The translations under genes and the position numbers were made by a program. A stretch of 64,000 nt of DNA. It comes from Vitrella brassicaformis CCMP3155 (lineage: Eukaryota; Protista; Chromerida). The notes beneath the pieces are model-generated. The model saw only the letters and a list, made by a program, of their open reading frames with translations, was not told where the DNA came from and did no database searches. The stretch covers positions 1 to 64,000 of the forward strand of contig CDMY01000461.1 in assembly GCA_001179505.1 (NCBI GenBank), in the 5' to 3' direction. Shown here piece by piece: positions 12,484 through 56,416 of the stretch. The stretch's first letter is position 1; each line of letters opens with the position of its first letter.

Positions 12484-14118
12484 CTATGCCCCTTCCTCCT
12501 GCTCTTCCTCAGCCACCGTCTCGTCCGCCTGGCCCTCCTCTCCCACACCATCACCTGCATCCCCACCAGCACCACCGGCAGCTTCATCAGTGTCCACCAC
12601 ATCCGCAACATCCGCTGGCTGCTCTTCATGTTCATCGACAGCAGGTGCGGGGGCTTCACCCTCGCCCTCGTCTGGTCGTGGGCTGCCGAGTGTGGGGGTG
12701 GCCTCGGGGCGGGCGGGGGCCGACGCGGGGGCCGTGATGACCAAGCTTCCGCCCTCGACCGACAGCCGGTCGGCCAGCTGCCCGTAGCCGCCATTGACCT
12801 GACAGACAAGGAGACACGAGAGAGAGGCCGCTGTGTGTTGTGTGAGGGTTTTTGTTGGCTTGTTTGTTACTTCCAGGAGCTGTTTGTGCTGGGTTTCATC
12901 GATCTGCAGCTCCAGCGTCTCCTGCGTGTCGCCGTTGTAGGCTGTCACGTGCAGCCCCGGACCGTCAGTCGACATCTCTGCCCACACACCACACAGACCA
13001 GAGACACACGACACAAAAGTCCTGTCTGTCTCTACTCTTGTTCTCCCTGACCCACCCACCGATAAGCCAGTAGTCCTTGCCGATCTTGCGCCCCTCCTTG
13101 AGTACGAACTTCTGGCTCTTGGTCCCCCTCCCATCGCCCCCAGTAGACTTGGATCGGTACGAGAAGAGATCCTCAGGCCGCGTCACAGATGATGCGTGGC
13201 CTGAGGTGGCGGGGCGGGGCCGCCGTCCACTCTCCTTTGATGCCGCTGATCGGGGCGGCTTCTTGGAGGCCCTTTCCTCCTCGGTGCGGGCCGTCCTCCT
13301 TCTGCACGCAACAAGCGATGAACAAAAAAGGCACACAGAGAGAGGGGGAAAGAATGCACACAAAGAGGGATGGACGCATGAGAAGGAGAGCACAGGGAAG
13401 GATAGGATAAGCGGTAGATACATGAGGCATTCTCTGTTTGCTGATCCCTCCTTGACCCTCCCTGACCCGTCGGTGGTTGCCCGAGGGCTCCTGTCTCCCC
13501 GCCTCGAGCAAGTCGACTCGCGGTAGGTCGACAGGTTGAAGTCATCCGGCCTTTCAAAGGCATGCAGCACGTCGGGGTTCTCGCACGCATTCTTGTAGTA
13601 GGCCAGTGAGTTCTTTGCGTGGACGTCCCACTCGATGGCCGAGATGACCGGCTGGCACTCCTGGATGCGCCGGAGGATCTGGAGGTTCTCCTGCGTGATG
13701 CGCTGAGCCTGCTGCTTCCTGTAGGTACGGTGCAGAGACGACAGGCCCGTGAAGGGGCGTAGGCGGCTGTAGGTTGGGCGCTTCATGATGTCATACATCC
13801 GACGAAGCAGAATCCTGACAGACAGACAAGGGAGACAACGAACGGCCCAGACACAAAGTTGCATCCATCGATGACATCAGAGAGAGATGAGGGTTCAAGC
13901 TTGGCCGACCTGTTTTGCCTGTCGATTTCGACGTATCGTTCCTCGAGTGCCGCCTCCTTCTTTGCGTTCCACTGCATGTGCGGCTTGCCGAATGTCTTGG
14001 GAACTGCATTGTCGATGCTGGGCTTGACGGTGGCCTTGTTCCTCTCATGGATGCGCTGCCGGTGCTCCTCCCACTTCTTGTGACACACCTTGCTGCCCAC
14101 TGGGATGGCGCGATACAT
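12484..14118 (-). CDS. CFAP97/KIAA1430-like cilia- and flagella-associated protein (multi-exon)
   Basis: MYRAIPVGSK..KKWEEH..RIHERN..VKPSIDN...KKEAALEERYVEIDRQN-RILLRRMYDIM...SLH..RKQQAQRITQENLQILRRI is the CFAP97-domain signature. Acidic C-terminal tail. Confidence 0.75.
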
Positions 14119-20472: not shown

Positions 20473-23400
20473 ATTGATACAACAAGCCCCAACTCCTTCT
20501 TCGTTTTGTCACTGTTCTGTCTGTCCAGTTCGCTCCAATGACGATGGCGTGTTCGGCATGACGTACAGCGAGCACCGTTGGGACTTCCACCGTGTCCGTG
20601 AGGTCGAGGCGCTGCTCAGAAGACAGCCCTGGGCGGCCATGAAGACCATCGTCGTCTTTGCGTGGCGACAGTCTGACGCTGAGATGCTTGCAGATTCCCT
20701 GATGAAAACACGTACCTTAGGACACACACACCACTCAGAGAGTGACAGTGTTGTGTTGTGATGTGTTGTGGTTTGTTGTGTGCACTGCAGGTGTGTTTGG
20801 GGAGGTGGAACCCTATCACTTGGGGCGAACGAGGGGACAGCTGGCCGCGGTGATGGATCGATTCATGACAGGTGAGGAACTGAGTGGGCTATGGGCGTCC
20901 ATCCACACACACACACACACACACGCGGAGCATACAGACACGCATGACATGGCTGCCCACGTGTGTTGTGTTGTGTCGTGTCTATGTGTGTGTAGGGAAG
21001 GTTCGCGTGTTGGTTGCGACGAGTGGCGTTGACCTCGTCCACGCAGGCCACGCGCCGCGAGCGGACGGGGTCATCCACTTGACCATCCCGAAGTCCATCG
21101 AGAACTACGTCAAGGACACCAAATACACAGGCGGACAGCCGCACCACAACGGTGCGCACACACGACCGACCGACACGTCTGCACCGTACCTCTCTCCCTC
21201 TCTCTGCCTGCCTGCCTGCCTGCTCTCTGCCTGCCTGCCTGCCTGCCTGTTTGTCTGTCTGTCTGTCAGGTGCTGATGGCCACCGCGGCCATTCTCATGT
21301 CTTTGTGCGTCCCGAGGACCTTCGAATGATGCACCGCAACGCGAGCGTGCCGTTGGTGGACCCCTGGGCGGCCACCCGCCTCGCCTGCACACTCATGGAC
21401 CACCGCATCCAGCCACGTGCCAATGCACGCACCAACACCAGCATCCACACTTTCTTACACGTCAGCCGATCGGACCAGCAGCCTGAAAGTGGCCAAGGTG
21501 GTGGTGGTGGTCGTGTGGTGGCCGTCAGTCTGCCGTCGACTCACGCCATGGCGGCCCCCAACGCCCAGGCACCCGATGACGTCACGACCTTCTTCCGCAT
21601 GCTCGACGACACGATACAGCACCAGTAGCAGCAGCAGCAAGACGACCCACCCACCACCGGCACCACGCGCATCTATCCCAACGTGCCCCTCACATACAAG
21701 CTGCGCTTCCTCCGGACCACCAAGGACGCCGTATGCGAGAAATCCGACTTCATGCGGTCCTTCATGGCCACCGCCACGCAGGACGCCAATAGTGTGTGGA
21801 GTGTACGGGCGGTGGAGGCCGTCACCGCCACGGACAGGAGCCCCCCGGAGCTGTCACAGCAGCTGGCTAACTCGGCGCATGACGAGGGCTTCACGGTGGG
21901 CAGGTGCGATTGGCATGCGAGGGGCGTGGTGGTCCACATGAGGGGAGGCGAGCCACAGGAGGATGGTCGTGAGCATGCATTTGGGGGCATCAGGGCGGCT
22001 GTGGAGGCTACCCTACAGAAGCTGTATGAGGCACTCACGTACGGGAGCGGCAGACAGGCAATACACGGACAGAGGTGGGAGGGTGGGTGAGTGGACGGGC
22101 TTGTATGTGTTCTTCTCTCTGTGTGTGCGTGTATCGATCAGGCTTAGTCTTGCCAAGTTGGAGGCGGCCTTCATGGCCTTGTACCTGTCAACCAAGGAAA
22201 CCGGCGCACAGGCGCAACTAGACAAACTGAATTCGCTCGTCCAGGTACGCACACACTCACTCACTCACTCACTCACACACACGGCCCACACCGCACTGTC
22301 CTTGAATGCGTGCAGGCGTATTTCGCGCACACCGAGGGCGGTGCTGGGTGTCACCACGGCCCGGTGCGGGTGGTGTGCGAGGCCGCCGTGGGGGCAGCCA
22401 AGGCCGACGGCCTCCGTGTGGAGTCGCTGCTGGACATCTGCGGCGGCGAGATCGGCAGCGAAAGTTTCTTAAGATTCAAACACGTAAGTCATCTGCGCGG
22501 TACGTCTGTCTGTGTCTTTGCCGAGCTCAGTGCTTTCATTGTGTGCGTGTCTGTGTCTTGTGTGCAGCTGTTTGCCTCGGTCCCCATGAACAGTGACCAA
22601 GTGGACCAGTGGGGCATCAGTACTCTCAACGGCGTCAGGCATCGCACCAAGATCGCCAACCAGCTCTCACACGCCGTCAAGAACACACTCAAGAACATGT
22701 ACGAAGTCATGCAGCACATCAATTCATCCATCCATCCATCCCCTGTGCATGCGGCTGCTTTGTGTGCTATCCATGCAGGCCTCTTCTGTACGAGTTGACC
22801 GAGCGGCGACCTACCGCGAGCGCGAGAGACGTGGCTGTCAACCACCTGGCGCCTCTCACGATCGCACGGGCCCTGGCGCGCATCAACACCCACTCCCTGG
22901 TGGGCGGAAGAAACCCCTGGCTGGGACCAAACCCATCCGTCGATCCGATCCATGATGGCATCTTTGTTTCTCTATGTGTGCAGCCCAAGTCGGTGTCTGA
23001 GGCCTTCAGCCCGATCACCATGGGTGCCCCTGANNNNNNNNNNNNNNNNNNNNNNNNNNNNNNNNNNNNNNNNNNNNNNNNNNNNNNNNNNNNNNNNNNN
23101 NNNNNNNNNNNNNNNNNNNNNNNNNNNNNNNNNNNNNNNNNNNNNNNNNNNNNNNNNNNNNNNNNNNNNNNNNNNNNNNNNNNNNNNNNNNNNNNNNNNN
23201 NNNNNNNNNNNNNNNNNNNNNNNNNNNNNNNNNNNNNNNNNNNNNNNNNNNNNNNNNNNNNNNNNNNNNNNNNNNNNNNNNNNNNNNNNNNNNNNNNNNN
23301 NNNNNNNNNNNNNNNNNNNNNNNNNNNNNNNNNGCCCGCAAGACAGAGAACAACAAGAAGGGCAACAAGAAGAGGGCGGCGGACACTGAGCTGGACGAGG

Positions 23401-45499: not shown

Positions 45500-47128
45500 C
45501 ATGTCTCACTCTCACCTCGCCGGCGGGTGGGCCAACGATGGACATTGATGAGTAAGGAAGGGTCTTCAGATATGAAATGTAGGCGGCGATCTGACACACA
45601 TACAAAAATAGGTGGAGACATGCTTACGTGAGGTTGTTGGCAAACCCTATCGCGGCAGGTGGCCCCGTACTTCCTGAAGTCGCGTAGTCGTTGCCACACC
45701 TCCTGGCGATTGCCGGTCCTGGTAAAGGTCGAAGGGGTCGGCCTCCTCCCACACGTATCCGACTCATCAGTCCCTTACCTGTCGCGGCCTTGACGAGTGC
45801 GCACTCGGCCTGGTCCCTCTCGAGCCCAATGCTCATGAGAATCCCCACCTCCTCGTCGGCCAGCTGTGCGCTGTCACCACTGCCGTCACCTGCAGCAGCC
45901 CCCCACCCACTGCGGTCTGCGGCTAGCGGCGTGAGGACGGGAGGGTCGTTGATGTCCGGGTCGTCCATGTGTGCGATTAGCCACTCGAGGGCCGCATCGG
46001 GAGTGGCGTTGGGGACCGCCAAGACGGCACGACTGACGCACAGCACACATCAGTCAGTGACACATAGAGGTGTGTGAGGAGGGTCTCGGCTCTCTTTGGT
46101 TGTGTTTTGTTTGTGGTCACTCACTTGGCGGCGTTTTCCGAGTAGCCCATAGAGACCAGCTGCGCCACCACCATCTCATCAGGCACCTTAGCCGGGGAAC
46201 CACCATCGCCTTTGCCCCCGCCACCGCGTTTGGCAGCAGCGGCCCCCTTGACGTTGGTGCGGTAGAGGTCGGATTGGTCGTCGCTGTGGCGGGACAGCAG
46301 CAGGTCCACAGCCGCCTCGACAGCCATGCCATTGGGAACACGCAGCGCCGCTTCCCTGTGGGAGCCATCAGCCACACACAGACATGCAGGTGTGAGCGAT
46401 TAATCGATTGCATCACGCCCCTCGCTGTCTGTCTGTCTGTCTGTCGACGCGTGGGAAAGAGTCTCGTGAGATATAAAATGTAGGCGGCGATCTGACACAC
46501 ATACAGCGACGGAGATTGTGTCTCTGTATCTGTGAGGCGAAAGTGTTGCTCGCCTCCTTCTCCACCTTGAGCGCATCCCTCTCCTGCTTGACCGCCGCCA
46601 GCTCCTCCTTGAGCGTCGCGAGCTCCGCCTCCAACTCGTCGCGGGTCTTTGTCTGTCTCTGATGACAACACACGCACACACACACACCATGAATGAGCAG
46701 ACCTCAGAGATGCAGCGGCACATGTGCAGCTGTGAAGTGCTGTGCAGTTCGGTTACCGGGGGCTGCCCTGGTGGCCGCTCGATGGAGGCTTGGATGAGCA
46801 TGGCGTGGCAGCGGTCGCGGGCCTGGTTGGAGAGGGCGTTGAAGCGCAGCTCGAACTCCTGCATATATTCACGATGATGGACACAGTGAGTGAGTGCAAG
46901 GATGGACATATGTTCGGTCTCTCCTCGGAAGAGTGTTTGTTTCCATCTTAAAGCACGTACGTAACTCACGTCAATGAAGTGCACCTTCATCTCCCAGAGC
47001 TTCCACATGAAGACGACGGGGTCGTCGTCGAAGTTTGGCCAGTCGATGTCCTTGGGGTCCTCTGGAATGGTGGTCTCGTACCAGTCCTCGACGACCTCAG
47101 GATCCAGCACGTACCTGACCTCCGACAT
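45500..47128 (-). CDS. Chimeric multi-UBA protein: novel N-terminus + coiled coil + UBA-like + USP5-derived UBA-UBA cassette (3' end uncertain)
   Basis: [20 protein letters not shown]|RAVLAVPNATPDAALEWLIAHMDDPDINDPP...QLADEEVGILMSIGLERDQAECALVK parallels the USP5 sequence at 54856-55233, with identical intron positions. Confidence 0.7.
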
Positions 47129-50857: not shown

Positions 50858-53800
50858 ATGGTGTCTGAGACGGAGTTAGCGGCCGTGCGGTCGGCAATGC
50901 TCACCGTCCGCGTGCCCAATGCAAGCGACAAGGTCTTCAAAACCGAATGCCTCTTCAGGTCGGTGGCACGGCACCGACACACTGACTGACCGAAGAGGGA
51001 GGGAGAGATCTCTCACGCAACACACAGATCTACAAGTGTGTCGTGCTGTCTGTCTGCCTGCCTGTGTGGGTGTGGGTGTGGATGTGTTCAGTTTCGACAC
51101 CGTCGAGTCGCCCGACGGCCTGTACATCAACATGAGGACGTTCGAGTGCTTCGGCAGGGACTTCGTGCAGCTGGACAGCGAACGCACCGGCAACAAGCTC
51201 TACTACCACATCAAAGACGTCAAGATCCCCAAGCCGCAAACCGAGGACACCGAGACCGGAGAGGCCAAGAAGGAGCCCACCAAGCTGGCGATTGGCGTCG
51301 AGGGCGGGTAAGTGCCATGGGCATCGTGGTGGACGGTGGGGACAGACAGAACAGACGAGGGTGGGAGGGAGCTGGTTGCGGTGATGATCTCTATTCCAAG
51401 AGGTTGCTACTGAAGTGGCCGTGTTGATACCTACACTGAACAATCCGAATCTGAGCAACCGATACAGTCAGTCAGTCAGTCAGTCAGACAGGCGAGAAGA
51501 GTTTTGTGGGCGTCAGCGTCGTGTGATGACACGCGATTTTACCCACGCTTTTGATGCTTCCGAAGCGTCAAGGGCACGTGATACAGACAAACCGCTACCC
51601 TAGCCAAGCTGACCACTGCTGACGCCCACACATACACACATACACACACACACACACAGAGACAGAGAGAGAGAGAGAGAGAGCGAGAGAGAGTGCACAG
51701 TACACAGATGGCGCACGGATGGCTGCGTGTGGCTCTCTCTGTATGTGTGTGTCGTGTCAGATTCATGGGGGGCGAGGCAGCGTTCGAGACAATATCGAGC
51801 ACGTCGGTGGTGGTGCTGCCTGAGGGGTATGAGATCCCTCTCCCCTGCCAAGAGCTGCCCGAGATCGTCATCCAGGTACACACACACACACACGGAAAGA
51901 CGAAGAATGAATGCATGTGTGTGTGTCTGTGTGTCTGTGTATGTACTGTTCAGTGCATCACTGGGATCACGGCTCACTCTGGCGGTGCGATTGAGGACCA
52001 TCTCGCTGCATATGAGGAGGAACCGCCGAAGGTACCACAACACAACACAACACATTACACGCACAGTAGACGGACAGACAGACAGAACAGAATGGCCATC
52101 CCTCTCTGGTGTGCATGGTGGCGGTGTCTTGTGTTTGCTGTTTGCTGTCCTGTGGTGCAGCCGAGCAAGTACGCCGAGAATCTTATCCAGGTGGCCAACC
52201 CGCCTCAGATCCCTCCGGGGAACTGGAGGTGCGCCGAATGCGGCACCGGACAGAACCTCTGGCTCAACCTGTCCGACGGGTGAGAGGCGACGGGAGCACC
52301 ATCCCTGTATGTGTGCTGTGTGACAAATGGACGTCTGTGTGTCTTTGCTGCCTGTCGTGTGTAGGTTCATCGGGTGTGGTCGGAAGCTGTATTCGGTGTG
52401 GGATGGCTGTGTCGGCGGGCAGGAGGGCGCGGCCATCAGGCACTACCAGGTCGGTGGGCGAGTTAATTGTTCGTCCCGGCCACACACATGATTGTGCGAG
52501 TCTTTGGGCCATATTAGGACACTGGTTGCCAGTACCCCCTGGCTGTGAAGCTGGGCACCATCACCGCCCACACGGCAGACGTATACAGCTACGCCGCGGT
52601 GAGTTCTAACCTCGAGGACCCACACACACGACACTGACCGACTGACTGGCGACACTCGGAGCGATCGACGTCCGCACTGGGGCTTATGTGGGTGTGTCCA
52701 TGTGCGTGTGATTTAGGATGAGGACACCTCTGTGGAGGACCCGTACATAGCCAAACACCTCGCACACTTCGGCATCAACATTCAAAGCGTAACTGTGCCA
52801 CATAGGATACGCGACATGGCGGCATGCGTCGCGTGTGCACATGGATGTGTGTGTGTGTGTGTTTAGCTTGAGAAGACTGAGAAGACGATGACGGAGATGT
52901 CGATTGAGCACAACATCAAGTACCAGTGGGACCGCATCACCGAGGCCAACAAGAAACTCATCCGCATGGACGGACCAGGGTCAGTGAGGGAGACCACACA
53001 CACAACACACACATGTCACCAGTCGTTCGTGTGTGTACCGACCGGTGCCATTCTTGTGTGTGTTTGTGTCAGCTACATCGGTCTGAAGAACCTCGGCAAT
53101 AGCTGCTACATGAACTCTATCGTGCAGGTCACCCAAACCAGCCAATGCTCTTGACATCTCCCACTCTCCATGGGTGTGTGTCTCGGTGCAGGTGCTGTGC
53201 AGCCTCCCCGAGGCTCAGAAGAAGTTCTTCCAACACGCCGACGAGATCTTCAAGACGCTCCCACGGGTACGCGCGCATCCACATGACACCAAGATCAGAT
53301 CACCCCCCCACACCCACACCGACACCGACTTGTCTCTCTCTGGCCACACACATGAATCAATAATCAGGACACGAGCGCATCCTCCGACTTCCTGACGCAG
53401 CTGTGCAAGCTGTGTGTGGGGCTGCTGAGCGACCGCTACCCCCAGCAGCACCAGGCCGTCATGGCCAAGCGCAAGGAGCTGGCTGCCGAGGGGGTCGATA
53501 ACGCTTCGCTGTCGGAGGAGGGCACGTCGGTGTCGCCTGGCATGTTCAAGAGCGTCGTGGGCAAGGGGCATTACGAGTTCTCCTCCGGACGGTGAGCGCG
53601 AGTGAGAGAGAGAGAGAGAGAGACAGAGGGAGGGGCGGCCTCTATGTGTGTCTGTGTGGTGCATGTGTGGATGCAGTCAGCAGGATGCGTGTGAGTACTA
53701 CCAGCACCTGATCAACTCGATGATGGCCGTGGCCGAGCGGCTGCTGCCCTCACGATCGCCCGGCGCCGCTGCAGCTGCCGGCATCGACTTCACGCGGCTC

Positions 53801-55860
53801 TTCAAGTACTATGTAGGTAATGCGATTCGGTAGAGACAGGAGAAGACAGGAATGCCTGTGTGTGGTGCGTGGGCAGGAGGAACATCGCTACGAGTGCCCC
53901 CAGACCAATCGCGTAAGCAGCGCTATGTGGAAGGATGGATGGCCTGATGTATGTGTGTTGTGTATGTGCCCCCCACCAGGTCAAGTACAAGTTCAACGAG
54001 GAGGCCTTCCTGCTGCTGCCCGTCCCGGTCGAGTGCGCAACCAACAAGGAACAGGTACACACACGCGCACACAGACAGACAGACCGATACACACGCACAC
54101 ACACGGAGAGAGAGAGAGAGAGAGAGAGACTAGGCAGCCACACACAACACAACACCTGTTTCATCCGTGTGTCTTGTGTGTTTTTGCCTGCCTGGTCAGG
54201 TGCAGGAGTACGAGGAGCGCAAGGCCAAGCGACAAAAGACCGACGAGAAGGCCAAAGAGGTCTGCCAGCCACCACCCACACAGCCCGGGACAACCAACAC
54301 ACACACACCATGGGCACGTGTGTGTCCTGCGTGTCTGTGTGTATGTGTATGTGTGTGTTAGAAGGAGGAGGAGCCCATCCAGCCTCGTGTGCCCTTCAAG
54401 GCGTGCATCGACCAGTACTGCGGCCTGGGGGAGGTCGAGCTCAGATCGGAGGGACGAAATATCATCTGCCACTCACGAGTGAGTCGAACAATGGGATGAG
54501 AGAAGTGCACCCCTGTCTGTGTTGTCTGTGTATGCCACACAGGCGCGCCCCATGACGTTCCCGCCCTACCTGTGGGTGGTGCTGAAGCGCTTCTACCAAA
54601 AGCCTGACTGGACCACCGCCAAACTGGAGGCACTCGTGGAGGTCGGTAACTAACAGGCCCACACGCACTCAACAAACCGATACACACCCGACCTCTCTTC
54701 TCTTTTCTGTCCATCAGATGCCGTCTGAGATCGACCTGGAGATGTTGCGCGGCAAGGGGCCGCAGCCCGACGAGACGGAGCTGCCGTCTGAGCCTGATGC
54801 GGCCACGGCTGGTGCTGGGGGTGGTGCTGCCCCCGCTGCTGCTGCTGATGCGGCTCCTGATGAGATGGTGGTGGCGCAGCTGATGTCCATGGGCTACTCG
54901 AAAAACGCCGCTAAGTGAGAGGAAGAGACTCCTCGCCCTCTCAACTCTCTGCTTGTGTAATATGATGTCCATGTCTGTCCATGTCTGTCCATGTCAGGCG
55001 TGCCTCTCTGGCTGCCCCCAACGCCACAGCGGACGCGGCTCTCGAGTGGCTGTTCGGCCACATGGACGACCCCGACCTCAACGACCCTCCCGTCACCCCA
55101 CAGCCAGCAGCCGCCGGCGGCGGTGGTGGTGGTGGTGGTGCCGCCCAGCTGGACGACGAGAAGGTGGCGAACCTCATGAGCATGGGGTTCGAGAAAGACC
55201 AGGCCGAGTGCGCACTCCTCAAGACCAACATGGGTGAGCTGGCAGACATGGGAGGACAAGACACCTTGGTGCATATGTGTCTGTGTGTGGTTGTGTTGGT
55301 GCAGATGTGGAGCGTGCGGTCGACTGGCTGTTCTCCCACACGGACACCTTGGCTGCTGAGGTGGCGGCCATGAAGGCCGAGAGGGAGGGCGGCGGCAACG
55401 AGGCATCCAACGGTGGCGGTGATGTACAGATGGGGGGCGTCAGCAAGAAAGACCAATACCTCGATGGCGACGGTCAGCAAATCATCGGCCGTAGCGTAAA
55501 TGCCCTGTGTGTGTATTATGGTGGTGTGTGTGTGTAAGTCAGGCAAGTATTCGCTGGTGGGGTTTGTGACTCAGATGGGCAGCAACCTCGCCTGTGGCCA
55601 CTATGTGGCACACATCAACAAGGACGGCAAGTAAGGACCACTGACAAGAGAAGAGAAACACACTCTGCTCTCTCCCACTCTGAGTGAGTGGCGCCTCTCC
55701 TCCATCTCTATGTGTGTGTGGTGTTTCCTTTTCGTGTTCGTGTGTGTGACTGAACAGGTGGGTTGTGTATAACGATCGCAAGGTGGCCATCTCCGAGGAG
55801 CCGCCCTTCGAGTACGGTTACATGTACCTCTACAGGAGGAAGGACTACACGCCCAACTAG
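50858..55860 (+). CDS. USP5: Ubiquitin-specific protease 5/13 (UBP14/isopeptidase T) with nUBP, ZnF-UBP and two UBA domains
   Basis: [20 protein letters not shown]|[75 protein letters not shown]. Confidence 0.95.
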
Positions 55861-56416
55861 CTCACTCACTGACCGCCACTCGCCACTCCCTCACTCCCTC
55901 TCTCTCTCTCTCCCTCTCTCGAGGCTGTTGGTGTGTGAGTGTGACGCATTCCATTGCACTGCATGAGATGGGGCATACAGACGGGACTCTGCGATTTAAG
56001 AAATCCTCCTTTCTCCAGGGTTGGTTGGTTGGTTATTGTGTTTAACGAGACTCGTGTCTGTAACCCCGAGGGGATCCTGTCCAGGTCACGCACTAAACTA
56101 GCAGCATGCACATGCACAGAAGCATGCACACGGCCTGTCTCCCCATCCCACCCACCCACCCACCCACTCGACACGCACGTGCCACCCTATGATGGCCAGA
56201 AGAATCGCTGTCGACACCGGTTGCAGATATACGAGAATGACAGCCAGAGATAGGCACGACACCCAGAGGCTAGTCAGAGAGCTCGACGTCGAGCGCCCAC
56301 TGGTGTGAATTGCACTCGCCAAGCTGTTAGGGCTTCTCGTGAAACTCCTCCTCGCCACTTTGCCGGATCTACCGGATCACCCCCAGATCTGCCCACATCT
56401 CTCACTCCCGTCGACA

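Follow-up and report, generated by a model that had tools for sequence, protein, structure and literature searches.

Does a short minus-strand segment next to the USP5 gene of Vitrella brassicaformis CCMP3155 belong to a new gene, assembled from an inverted copy of USP5 exons? This had been proposed from an earlier reading of the letters alone (hereafter the sequence-only reading) for positions 46183-45779 of contig CDMY01000461.1, within the stretch of 64,000 nucleotides that was analyzed here as a whole (the window; 58% G+C, introns of about 60-150 nucleotides). The segment is part of the coding sequence of P0001, a 332-residue Vitrella protein carried in UniRef under the name 'UBA domain-containing protein', which was returned by a word search with the open frame over the first exons. 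On balance, we lean towards the view that P0001 is a real, Vitrella-specific chimeric gene, the working part of which would be a single USP5-type UBA domain carried on a coiled coil, and whose product would be a small, non-catalytic ubiquitin-binding adaptor.

Read on the minus strand, 46183-45779 duplicates part of USP5 (54856-55233) in inverted orientation, with exon parts that are 75-92% identical. A repeat finder recovers it as three inverted arms: 46120-46183 with 54856-54919 (64 nucleotides, 92%), 45893-46037 with 54993-55137 (145 nucleotides, 75%) and 45786-45890 with 55122-55226 (105 nucleotides, 81%). In a search of the own genome, the match of the cassette to USP5 has an E value of 1.5e-49, and the similarity claimed by the sequence-only reading at both DNA and protein level is thus real. 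Its boundaries are exact as well: the CCT of 'PDEM' lies at 46183-46181 in the copy and at 54856-54858 in USP5, and the exon ends, just before the GT donor, at 45779 in the former and at 55233 in the latter. Both genes share a phase-2 intron after 'NAA' (AA/gt...ag/T in the copy, AA/gt...ag/G in USP5). Phase and position of this intron had been read correctly, but the junction codon of the copy encodes N and not the K that had been assumed. The phase-1 GT donor that follows helices 1-2 of UBA2 is also common to both. Pairwise alignment gives high identity in the exon parts and practically none in the intervening intron, which measures 92 nucleotides in the copy and 83 in USP5 (54% identity globally, against 46 ± 3% for shuffles). 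The reading frame of the cassette is intact, and its two indels (1 and 5 codons) are in frame. Alignments and exon model therefore agree with what had been said of the second donor, the diverged introns and the open frames. Because intron positions and phases are shared with the donor, copying must have occurred at the DNA rather than the RNA level, and a retrocopy is ruled out.

The donor, on the plus strand, reads as a genuine USP5/UBP14 orthologue. Its ZnF-UBP, Cys box, QQDA, His box and C-terminus are all found in a three-frame translation, and the USP5 of Chromera velia (P0018) is colinear with 51084-55836, besides matching the cassette. A fully spliced USP5 mRNA (L048, JGI sample 3300017297) aligns to the gene in 23 blocks at about 100% identity, including 54716-54915, 54998-55233 and 55304-55473, so that the exon ends at 54915, 54998-55233 and 55304 are fixed by transcript. 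Two stretches of this gene matter here:

54856-55233, plus strand: donor segment, made of the end of the exon for the N-terminal part of UBA1, an intron, and the exon for the C-terminal part of UBA1 and the N-terminal part of UBA2 (L048 mRNA; colinearity with Chromera USP5)
55304-55345, plus strand: start of the USP5 exon that encodes helix 3 of UBA2, left uncopied (translation and L048 mRNA)

Since UBA1-UBA2 occupies the corresponding place in USP5 orthologues of many eukaryotes, the direction of copying was from USP5 to the minus-strand gene. As a separate observation, L048 shows 13 gapped positions (94% identity) against window 54716-54915, in a Gly/Ala-rich linker just upstream of UBA1; as the stretch is of low complexity, these gaps reflect polymorphism in length, a difference between strains or one between assemblies.

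Searches were run exon by exon or with the database protein P0001, and exons were joined for the identity check and for substitution counts. P0001 is rebuilt exactly from six exons on the minus strand (47128-45624), with GT-AG borders in all five introns and 332 codons free of internal stops. Its cluster has one member, from one contig, and exact look-ups of P0001 and of P0005, a protein that will be introduced below, returned zero records. The model can be laid out as follows:

46970-47128, minus strand: exon 1 (residues 1-53), tryptophan-rich (W-rich) N-terminus of a Vitrella-only orphan family (exon model identical to P0001)
46757-46858, minus strand: exon 2 (residues 54-87; exon model)
46501-46658, minus strand: exon 3 (residues 88-140), coiled coil; the last ~35 nucleotides and the donor AT/GTGTGT derive from a repeat unit of about 100 nucleotides (predicted structure; repeat identity)
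46125-46355, minus strand: exon 4, whole (exon model)
46184-46355, minus strand: first part of exon 4 (residues 141-197), half-UBA vestige (end of helix 2 and helix 3) and linker (BLASTP against exon 5)
46125-46183, minus strand: last part of exon 4, first half of UBA1, from USP5 54856-54914 (92% DNA identity; Pfam UBA_7 and UBA)
46033-46124, minus strand: intron 4 (92 nucleotides, phase 2), positional homologue of the USP5 intron 54915-54997 (alignment and exon model)
45779-46032, minus strand: exon 5, second half of UBA1, linker and helices 1-2 of UBA2, from USP5 54998-55233 (DNA arms, alignment, Pfam and predicted structure)
45624-45718, minus strand: exon 6, new tail of 31 residues and stop TAA at 45626-45624, without USP5 counterpart (exon model; low confidence in the predicted structure)

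As had been proposed, the cassette follows a W-rich N-terminus of unrelated origin and a coiled coil, all within one intact open reading frame (ORF), namely that of P0001. The N-terminal exons have paralogues of their own and no similarity to USP5. Hence, a traceable donor, shared introns, unrelated exons in one ORF and canonical splice sites, as expected of a chimeric gene, are all found at this locus. The question raised by the sequence-only reading of whether the model continues to 43885 has a negative answer, as P0001 stops at 45626-45624; its ORF ends at 45624 and is followed by a leader-like motif and a new ATG exon. In P0005, the model on C465, exon 5 is spliced to a 'GKWT..' exon further downstream; the equivalent splice was also discarded here, because it runs into a TGA in the window copy. 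Intron 5 (45719-45778, minus strand) consists of 60 nucleotides, in frame and stop-free, and its retention would add 20 residues and leave the tail unchanged.

How old is the copy, and has any part of it been under selection? Over 98 aligned codons, comparison of the cassette with USP5 by the Nei-Gojobori method yields a synonymous divergence (dS) of 0.55, a nonsynonymous divergence (dN) of 0.167 and a ratio (omega) of 0.30, with no disabling mutations; a dN/dS test of this kind had been proposed at the outset. When the parts are taken separately, omega is 0.18 for UBA1 alone and 0.42 for the remainder. Because a pairwise omega mixes two lineages, amino-acid differences were polarized using the Chromera USP5 and 12 other USP5s as outgroups, and the constraint was located in UBA1. 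Among nine differences in UBA1, the copy accounts for three derived states (A30P, F38I and, at the splice-junction codon, K19N), and USP5 for four or five (E15K, V25A, A39G, I46L and perhaps V9M). Neutral simulation of the copy branch at K=0.28 predicts about 21 amino-acid changes in UBA1, compared with 3-5 derived residues in the actual copy; the probability of five changes or fewer was 0 in 5000 runs, and 0.009 when K was set at 0.14. As derived residues are few in comparison with the simulation and no more numerous than in the parent, UBA1 of the copy has, judging from its substitutions, been under purifying selection comparable to that of the parent. Selection of this kind is detected in UBA1 only. 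In the UBA2 half, copy-specific changes are more frequent (D82A, M92I and F94L in the MGF loop, T106A and N107A), a pattern consistent with constraint having been relaxed once helix 3 was lost.

An environmental metagenome contig (L049; ENA ERZ893784, contig k147_4690031, 2171 nucleotides) is 91% identical to 54434-56012, introns included, which suggests the existence of a close, uncultured relative of Vitrella brassicaformis that serves well as an outgroup. The USP5 of this relative keeps the states of the copy GAA (Glu) and GCC (Ala), and the corresponding changes are therefore recent in the USP5 of CCMP3155. In the comparison with L049, 73 sites are copy-specific, against 8 and 6, so the duplication is older than the split from the L049 relative. 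Altogether, a dS of about 0.55 and precedence over the split from a 91%-identical relative indicate that the duplication is old.

The anatomy of the UBA part was examined by profile searches and by AlphaFold2, run on an alignment of 73 sequences. UBA1 of P0001 (residues 199-246) matches UBA_7 (PF22562) with 79.5 bits (cut-off 27, E 1.7e-22) over profile positions 1-48 of 48, and UBA (PF00627) with 28.8 bits (cut-off 22.4). The loop SMGY is kept, and helices are predicted at 200-208, 213-222 and 228-237. UBA1 thus combines a full-length profile match with a predicted three-helix bundle and the M-G-F/Y loop, the features by which family membership was judged. The predicted local distance difference test (pLDDT) gives 91-98 in UBA1, 80-90 in a helix at 93-144 and 80-94 in the two helices of UBA2; linkers and tail fall below 50, and a predicted template modelling score (pTM) of 0.39 indicates that there is no global packing. 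UBA2 (residues 272-303) consists of helices 1-2 only: the exon that encodes helix 3 in USP5 (from 55304) was not copied, and an unrelated tail of 31 residues takes its place. No significant Pfam match was found for UBA2 of P0001.

A further UBA-like unit (residues 141-163; EAALRVPNGMAVEAAVDLLLSRHSDD..DL) lies at the start of exon 4 and uses the same phase-2 acceptor as exon 5. In BLASTP, its alignment with exon 5 begins at the second residue of each exon (E 0.002, 36% over 55 residues). At the DNA level, the USP5 segment that it matches best is 55049-55082, at the end of UBA1 helix 3, with a score equal to the best of 200 shuffles. No Pfam family is matched by the unit, and it contains only the end of helix 2 and helix 3 instead of a three-helix bundle. 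The most likely interpretation, from the sequence comparisons, is that the unit duplicates the first half of exon 5, being either older or free of constraint, and persists as a half-domain scar. The alternative that the unit is the missing helix 3 of UBA2, displaced by circular permutation, was considered in view of the likeness of AVEAAVDLLLS to the sequence of that helix in USP5; however, the best DNA match and the colinear BLASTP alignment favor the second half of UBA1 and the start of exon 5.

In light of the above, the domain content announced by the sequence-only reading needs some correction. Of the UBA1-UBA2 exons, UBA1 is whole and UBA2 is represented by its first two helices; the other UBA-like unit does exist, albeit as half a UBA and as a diverged relative of the cassette's own exon 5. 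A polyubiquitin reader that uses UBA1 and UBA2 together has to be abandoned, as only UBA1 is whole, and UBA2 has lost helix 3 and carries a changed MGF loop; a decoy for USP5 substrates, also suggested by that reading, is a conjecture. The absence of USP catalytic motifs from the minus-strand gene was, in turn, well seen. P0001 has no Pfam match to UCH or zf-UBP, and no catalytic segment of the Chromera USP5 maps to the minus strand, as the catalytic part maps to the plus-strand gene only. P0001 therefore carries the USP5 UBA cassette only, and a full USP5 paralogue is ruled out.

A mechanism compatible with these observations can be outlined. About 400 bp of the USP5 orthologue, 9 kb away, were duplicated in inverted orientation at the DNA level; the copied piece starts with the last 59 nucleotides of one exon, continues through the intron and the following exon, and extends a few bases past it. 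The piece would then have been joined to exons of a lineage-specific W-rich/coiled-coil gene family. UBA1 has remained whole, held by purifying selection since the duplication, and the copied UBA2 half and the upstream half-UBA would have been left as vestiges. The coiled coil, of about 50 residues, would pair or oligomerize the single UBA, thus conferring avidity for ubiquitin chains or ubiquitinated partners. Ubiquitin binding and oligomerization are what the domain family and the predicted fold lead one to expect, and the exon model suggests that exons 1-6 may form one mRNA. Local exon shuffling from a distance of about 9 kb, as initially proposed, stands insofar as an inverted DNA duplication is concerned; the idea of one clean event does not, given the half-UBA duplicate, a repeat at the module junction and a decayed sister composite on another contig, C465.

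The C465 sister deserves description. Exon 1 of P0001 has only two paralogues, C465:721-870 (82% amino-acid identity) and the more distant C465:11322-11453 (48%, with a TAG). Comparison of exon 1 with the C465 copy yields dS 0.32, dN 0.085 and an omega of about 0.26, from small counts. The N-terminus has no match in Pfam, in the ESM Atlas or, by word search, outside Vitrella, and a full HMMER search, with a reach of E 3e-10 for matches to the N-terminus only, detected it only in P0002 (Vitrella) among the 150 matches listed. The own-genome search found a further copy of the second cassette exon on C465 (82%), and C465:600-2180 turned out to be a duplicate of the composite as a whole, both rearranged and decayed. 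It retains the W-rich exon, exon 2 and, with deletions, the coiled-coil exon; exon 4 is absent; and exon 5, with a 24-nucleotide deletion in helix 3 of UBA1, is followed by sequence that matches window 45127-44663. Block identities of 80, 85, 89-93 and 94.5% indicate repeated rearrangement. The duplicate is annotated as two chimeras: P0002, which consists of RecQ-like C-terminal exons, the W-rich exon and the coiled coil, and P0005, which starts inside the decayed cassette. In P0002, the W-rich gene terminates at a stop codon of its own, ahead of the UBA relic. Because the derived states SMG-L and VKAATG are common to the copy and the C465 relic, a single USP5-to-copy event was followed by secondary duplication, and the existence of the decayed sister makes the P0001 locus part of a mosaic of segmental duplicates. 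The sister itself illustrates what unconstrained copies look like.

Other features of C465:1-13400 are RecQ-helicase-like C-terminal exons with a leader-like unit of about 100 nucleotides, present twice and inverted (~1-690 and ~12790-13350). The W-rich exon and the start of the gene located after P0001 each occur there in two copies. In the window, the RecQ part of P0002 finds a counterpart at 21236-21373 (48% amino-acid identity).

The junction between the N-terminal and UBA modules has a peculiar composition. A direct repeat of 42 nucleotides, detected by the repeat finder, flanks the UBA part:

46464-46505, minus strand: leader-like motif, copy 1 (TGTGTGTCAG ATCGCCGCCTACATTTTATATC), at the 5' end of intron 3 (direct repeat)
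45563-45604, minus strand: leader-like motif, copy 2, 20 nucleotides after the P0001 stop; its 3' end lies about 22 nucleotides before the ATG of the next gene (MSIVGPPAGE/gt) (direct repeat)

The arrangement of motif and first exon found at copy 2 is conserved at C465:11812. A 24-nucleotide core, CAGATSGCYGCCTACATTTTATAT (45570-45593 and 46471-46494, minus strand), has 608 matches with three mismatches or fewer in the 72.7-Mb genome, and the reversed control has none; examples elsewhere are found at G000:C542, C677, C113 and C283. Inspection of 37 copies revealed unrelated flanks, and a pyrimidine/TG-rich tract ending in CAG, similar to a 3' splice site, upstream of the core. In interpretable cases, a first-exon ATG lies 5-90 nucleotides downstream on the same strand; among them are the gene that comes next in the window, the paralogue of that gene on C465, and exon 1 (W-rich) of the C465 copy. 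The complement of the core contains TATAAAA. The core could be a core-promoter element or a conserved leader/3' splice-site module, and a literature search on spliced leaders or promoter motifs of Vitrella found nothing that matches it. In P0001, P0002 and P0005, the motif is located inside the intron that joins unrelated modules. Window 46539-46446 belongs to a repeat unit of about 100 nucleotides that also occurs at C465:589-687 and, inverted, in L008 (85-89% identity). From its sequence make-up, the join of the N-terminal half to the UBA half is evolutionarily secondary.

The gene after P0001 (45547-43885, minus strand) starts with MSIVGPPAGE, and its exons encode ..VSFPEKLVILNEW.. and ..RPYYLYAINSVPQP..; its downstream exons (44699-43888) matched no Pfam family. 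Part of this gene has a duplicate on C465, with exons assigned to P0005 in the annotation.

Several observations weigh against a functional chimeric gene. UBA2 is cut short, with IGL in place of its MGF loop. The N-terminus lacks relatives outside Vitrella, and sister copies are decaying. When six P0001 peptides were searched against the JGI collection, in which one Vitrella transcriptome is demonstrable, only foreign UBA proteins were retrieved, with 56% identity at most, and word searches found no transcript-derived ORF for P0001; the same collection contains the spliced USP5 mRNA L048. The open frame of the cassette is weakly informative, as 21% of neutral simulations stay open. Lastly, the end of exon 3 (the last ~35 nucleotides and the GT donor) comes from the ~100-nucleotide repeat unit, which is non-coding at other sites. 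Because of this origin, and because the motif normally precedes gene starts, the fusion of N-terminal and UBA parts may be an annotation inference.

One explanation that accommodates many of these observations is that the locus is a by-product of segmental duplication, silent or never functional as annotated, and that P0001 is an ORF that the predictor pieced together from a mosaic of gene fragments. The constraint on UBA1 would then be a legacy of part of its history in an earlier gene context, and the locus would now be heading for decay like its C465 copy. Failure to find a P0001 transcript where the USP5 mRNA is present agrees with this possibility, and so do the truncated UBA2, the vestigial half-UBA, and the fate of the C465 composite, with exon 4 lost, UBA1 helix 3 interrupted by a deletion, blocks of unequal identity and annotation split between P0002 and P0005. 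Against a silent relic stand a UBA1 with no more derived residues than its parent, GT-AG borders in all five introns, cassette indels that are all in frame, and 332 codons without a stop despite the age of the copy. We consider this explanation unlikely, albeit worth keeping in mind.

Another possibility is that two genes have been merged: a W-rich/coiled-coil gene, and a short UBA gene that would start from the motif in intron 3, with Met149 as the start and a product of about 184 residues. A variant is that alternative isoforms exist and that the fused model is just one of them. The abundance of CAGATSGCYGCCTACATTTTATAT in the genome and its position upstream of same-strand first-exon ATGs, including those of the next gene and of the C465 W-rich exon 1, lend some appeal to this idea, as does the stop of the C465 W-rich gene before the UBA relic. 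On the other hand, the leader role of the motif is putative, the first ATGs downstream of copy 1 would enter the UBA frame only if a small intron were spliced out, and no ORF of 77-245 residues containing exon 5 was found in the protein collection. We give this interpretation little credence.

If P0001 is a functional chimeric gene, as we favor, an attractive speculation is that it is expressed and maintained by selection, and that its product binds the same free or K48-type ubiquitin chains, at the site taken by UBA1 in USP5, thus tuning USP5 activity or chain recycling. We regard such a role as rather improbable. Were it true, the presence of donor, product and decayed sibling in one genome would provide a natural model for the origin of a ubiquitin receptor. 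A more modest assessment is that P0001 documents the birth of a protein predicted to bind ubiquitin, by partial duplication and with unusually complete anatomy: a donor 9 kb away with the same introns, one selected domain, two half-domain scars and a decaying sister. The abundant 24-nucleotide motif found at module junctions may, in turn, be a more interesting lead than P0001 itself.

The best solved relatives of P0001 are the tandem UBAs of USP13 and USP5 (2LBC and 3IHP). The cassette descends directly from the Vitrella version of the tandem UBA module found in USP5 (IsoT), USP13 and plant UBP14 (3IHP, 2LBC, 2DAG and 1VEK), and it shares intron positions with Vitrella USP5. UBA1 of P0001 aligns end to end with UBA1 of USP13 and USP5, including the 'HMDDPD(F/I)NDP' extension. 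In USP5, the UBAs interrupt the catalytic domain and function jointly with it. Unlike USP5, USP13 and UBP14, P0001 lacks ZnF-UBP, Cys box and His box, its UBA1 is the only whole UBA, and its UBA2 has no helix 3.

A closer parallel is provided by a protein of Phaeocystis cordata (EP00908_P003919 of EukProt, our P0153; 454 residues), which is the best non-Vitrella match to the cassette among the matches listed (56% identity). Like P0001, it is non-catalytic and carries UBA1 domains of the USP5/13 type. Its origin is, however, independent: it has two complete UBA1-like repeats and UIM-like motifs (detected by eye), no coiled coil and no W-rich N-terminus, and its donor locus cannot be traced. Re-use of the USP5 UBA as a free ubiquitin reader has therefore happened elsewhere, and P0153 provides a precedent for P0001.

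Chimeric new genes formed by partial duplication or exon shuffling are a classical subject, exemplified by jingwei in Drosophila. As in the classical cases, a parental fragment, introns included, has given rise to a copy close by, which became part of a new ORF alongside unrelated exons, and both donor and recipient are readable in one genome. There are also differences: P0001 is known here from genomic sequence, the recipient belongs to an orphan family that undergoes rearrangement, and part of the copied module is vestigial. Origin by partial duplication and recruitment is a classical mechanism and not a new kind of biology, and P0001 adds to the picture of the Vitrella genome as rich in rearranged gene fragments.

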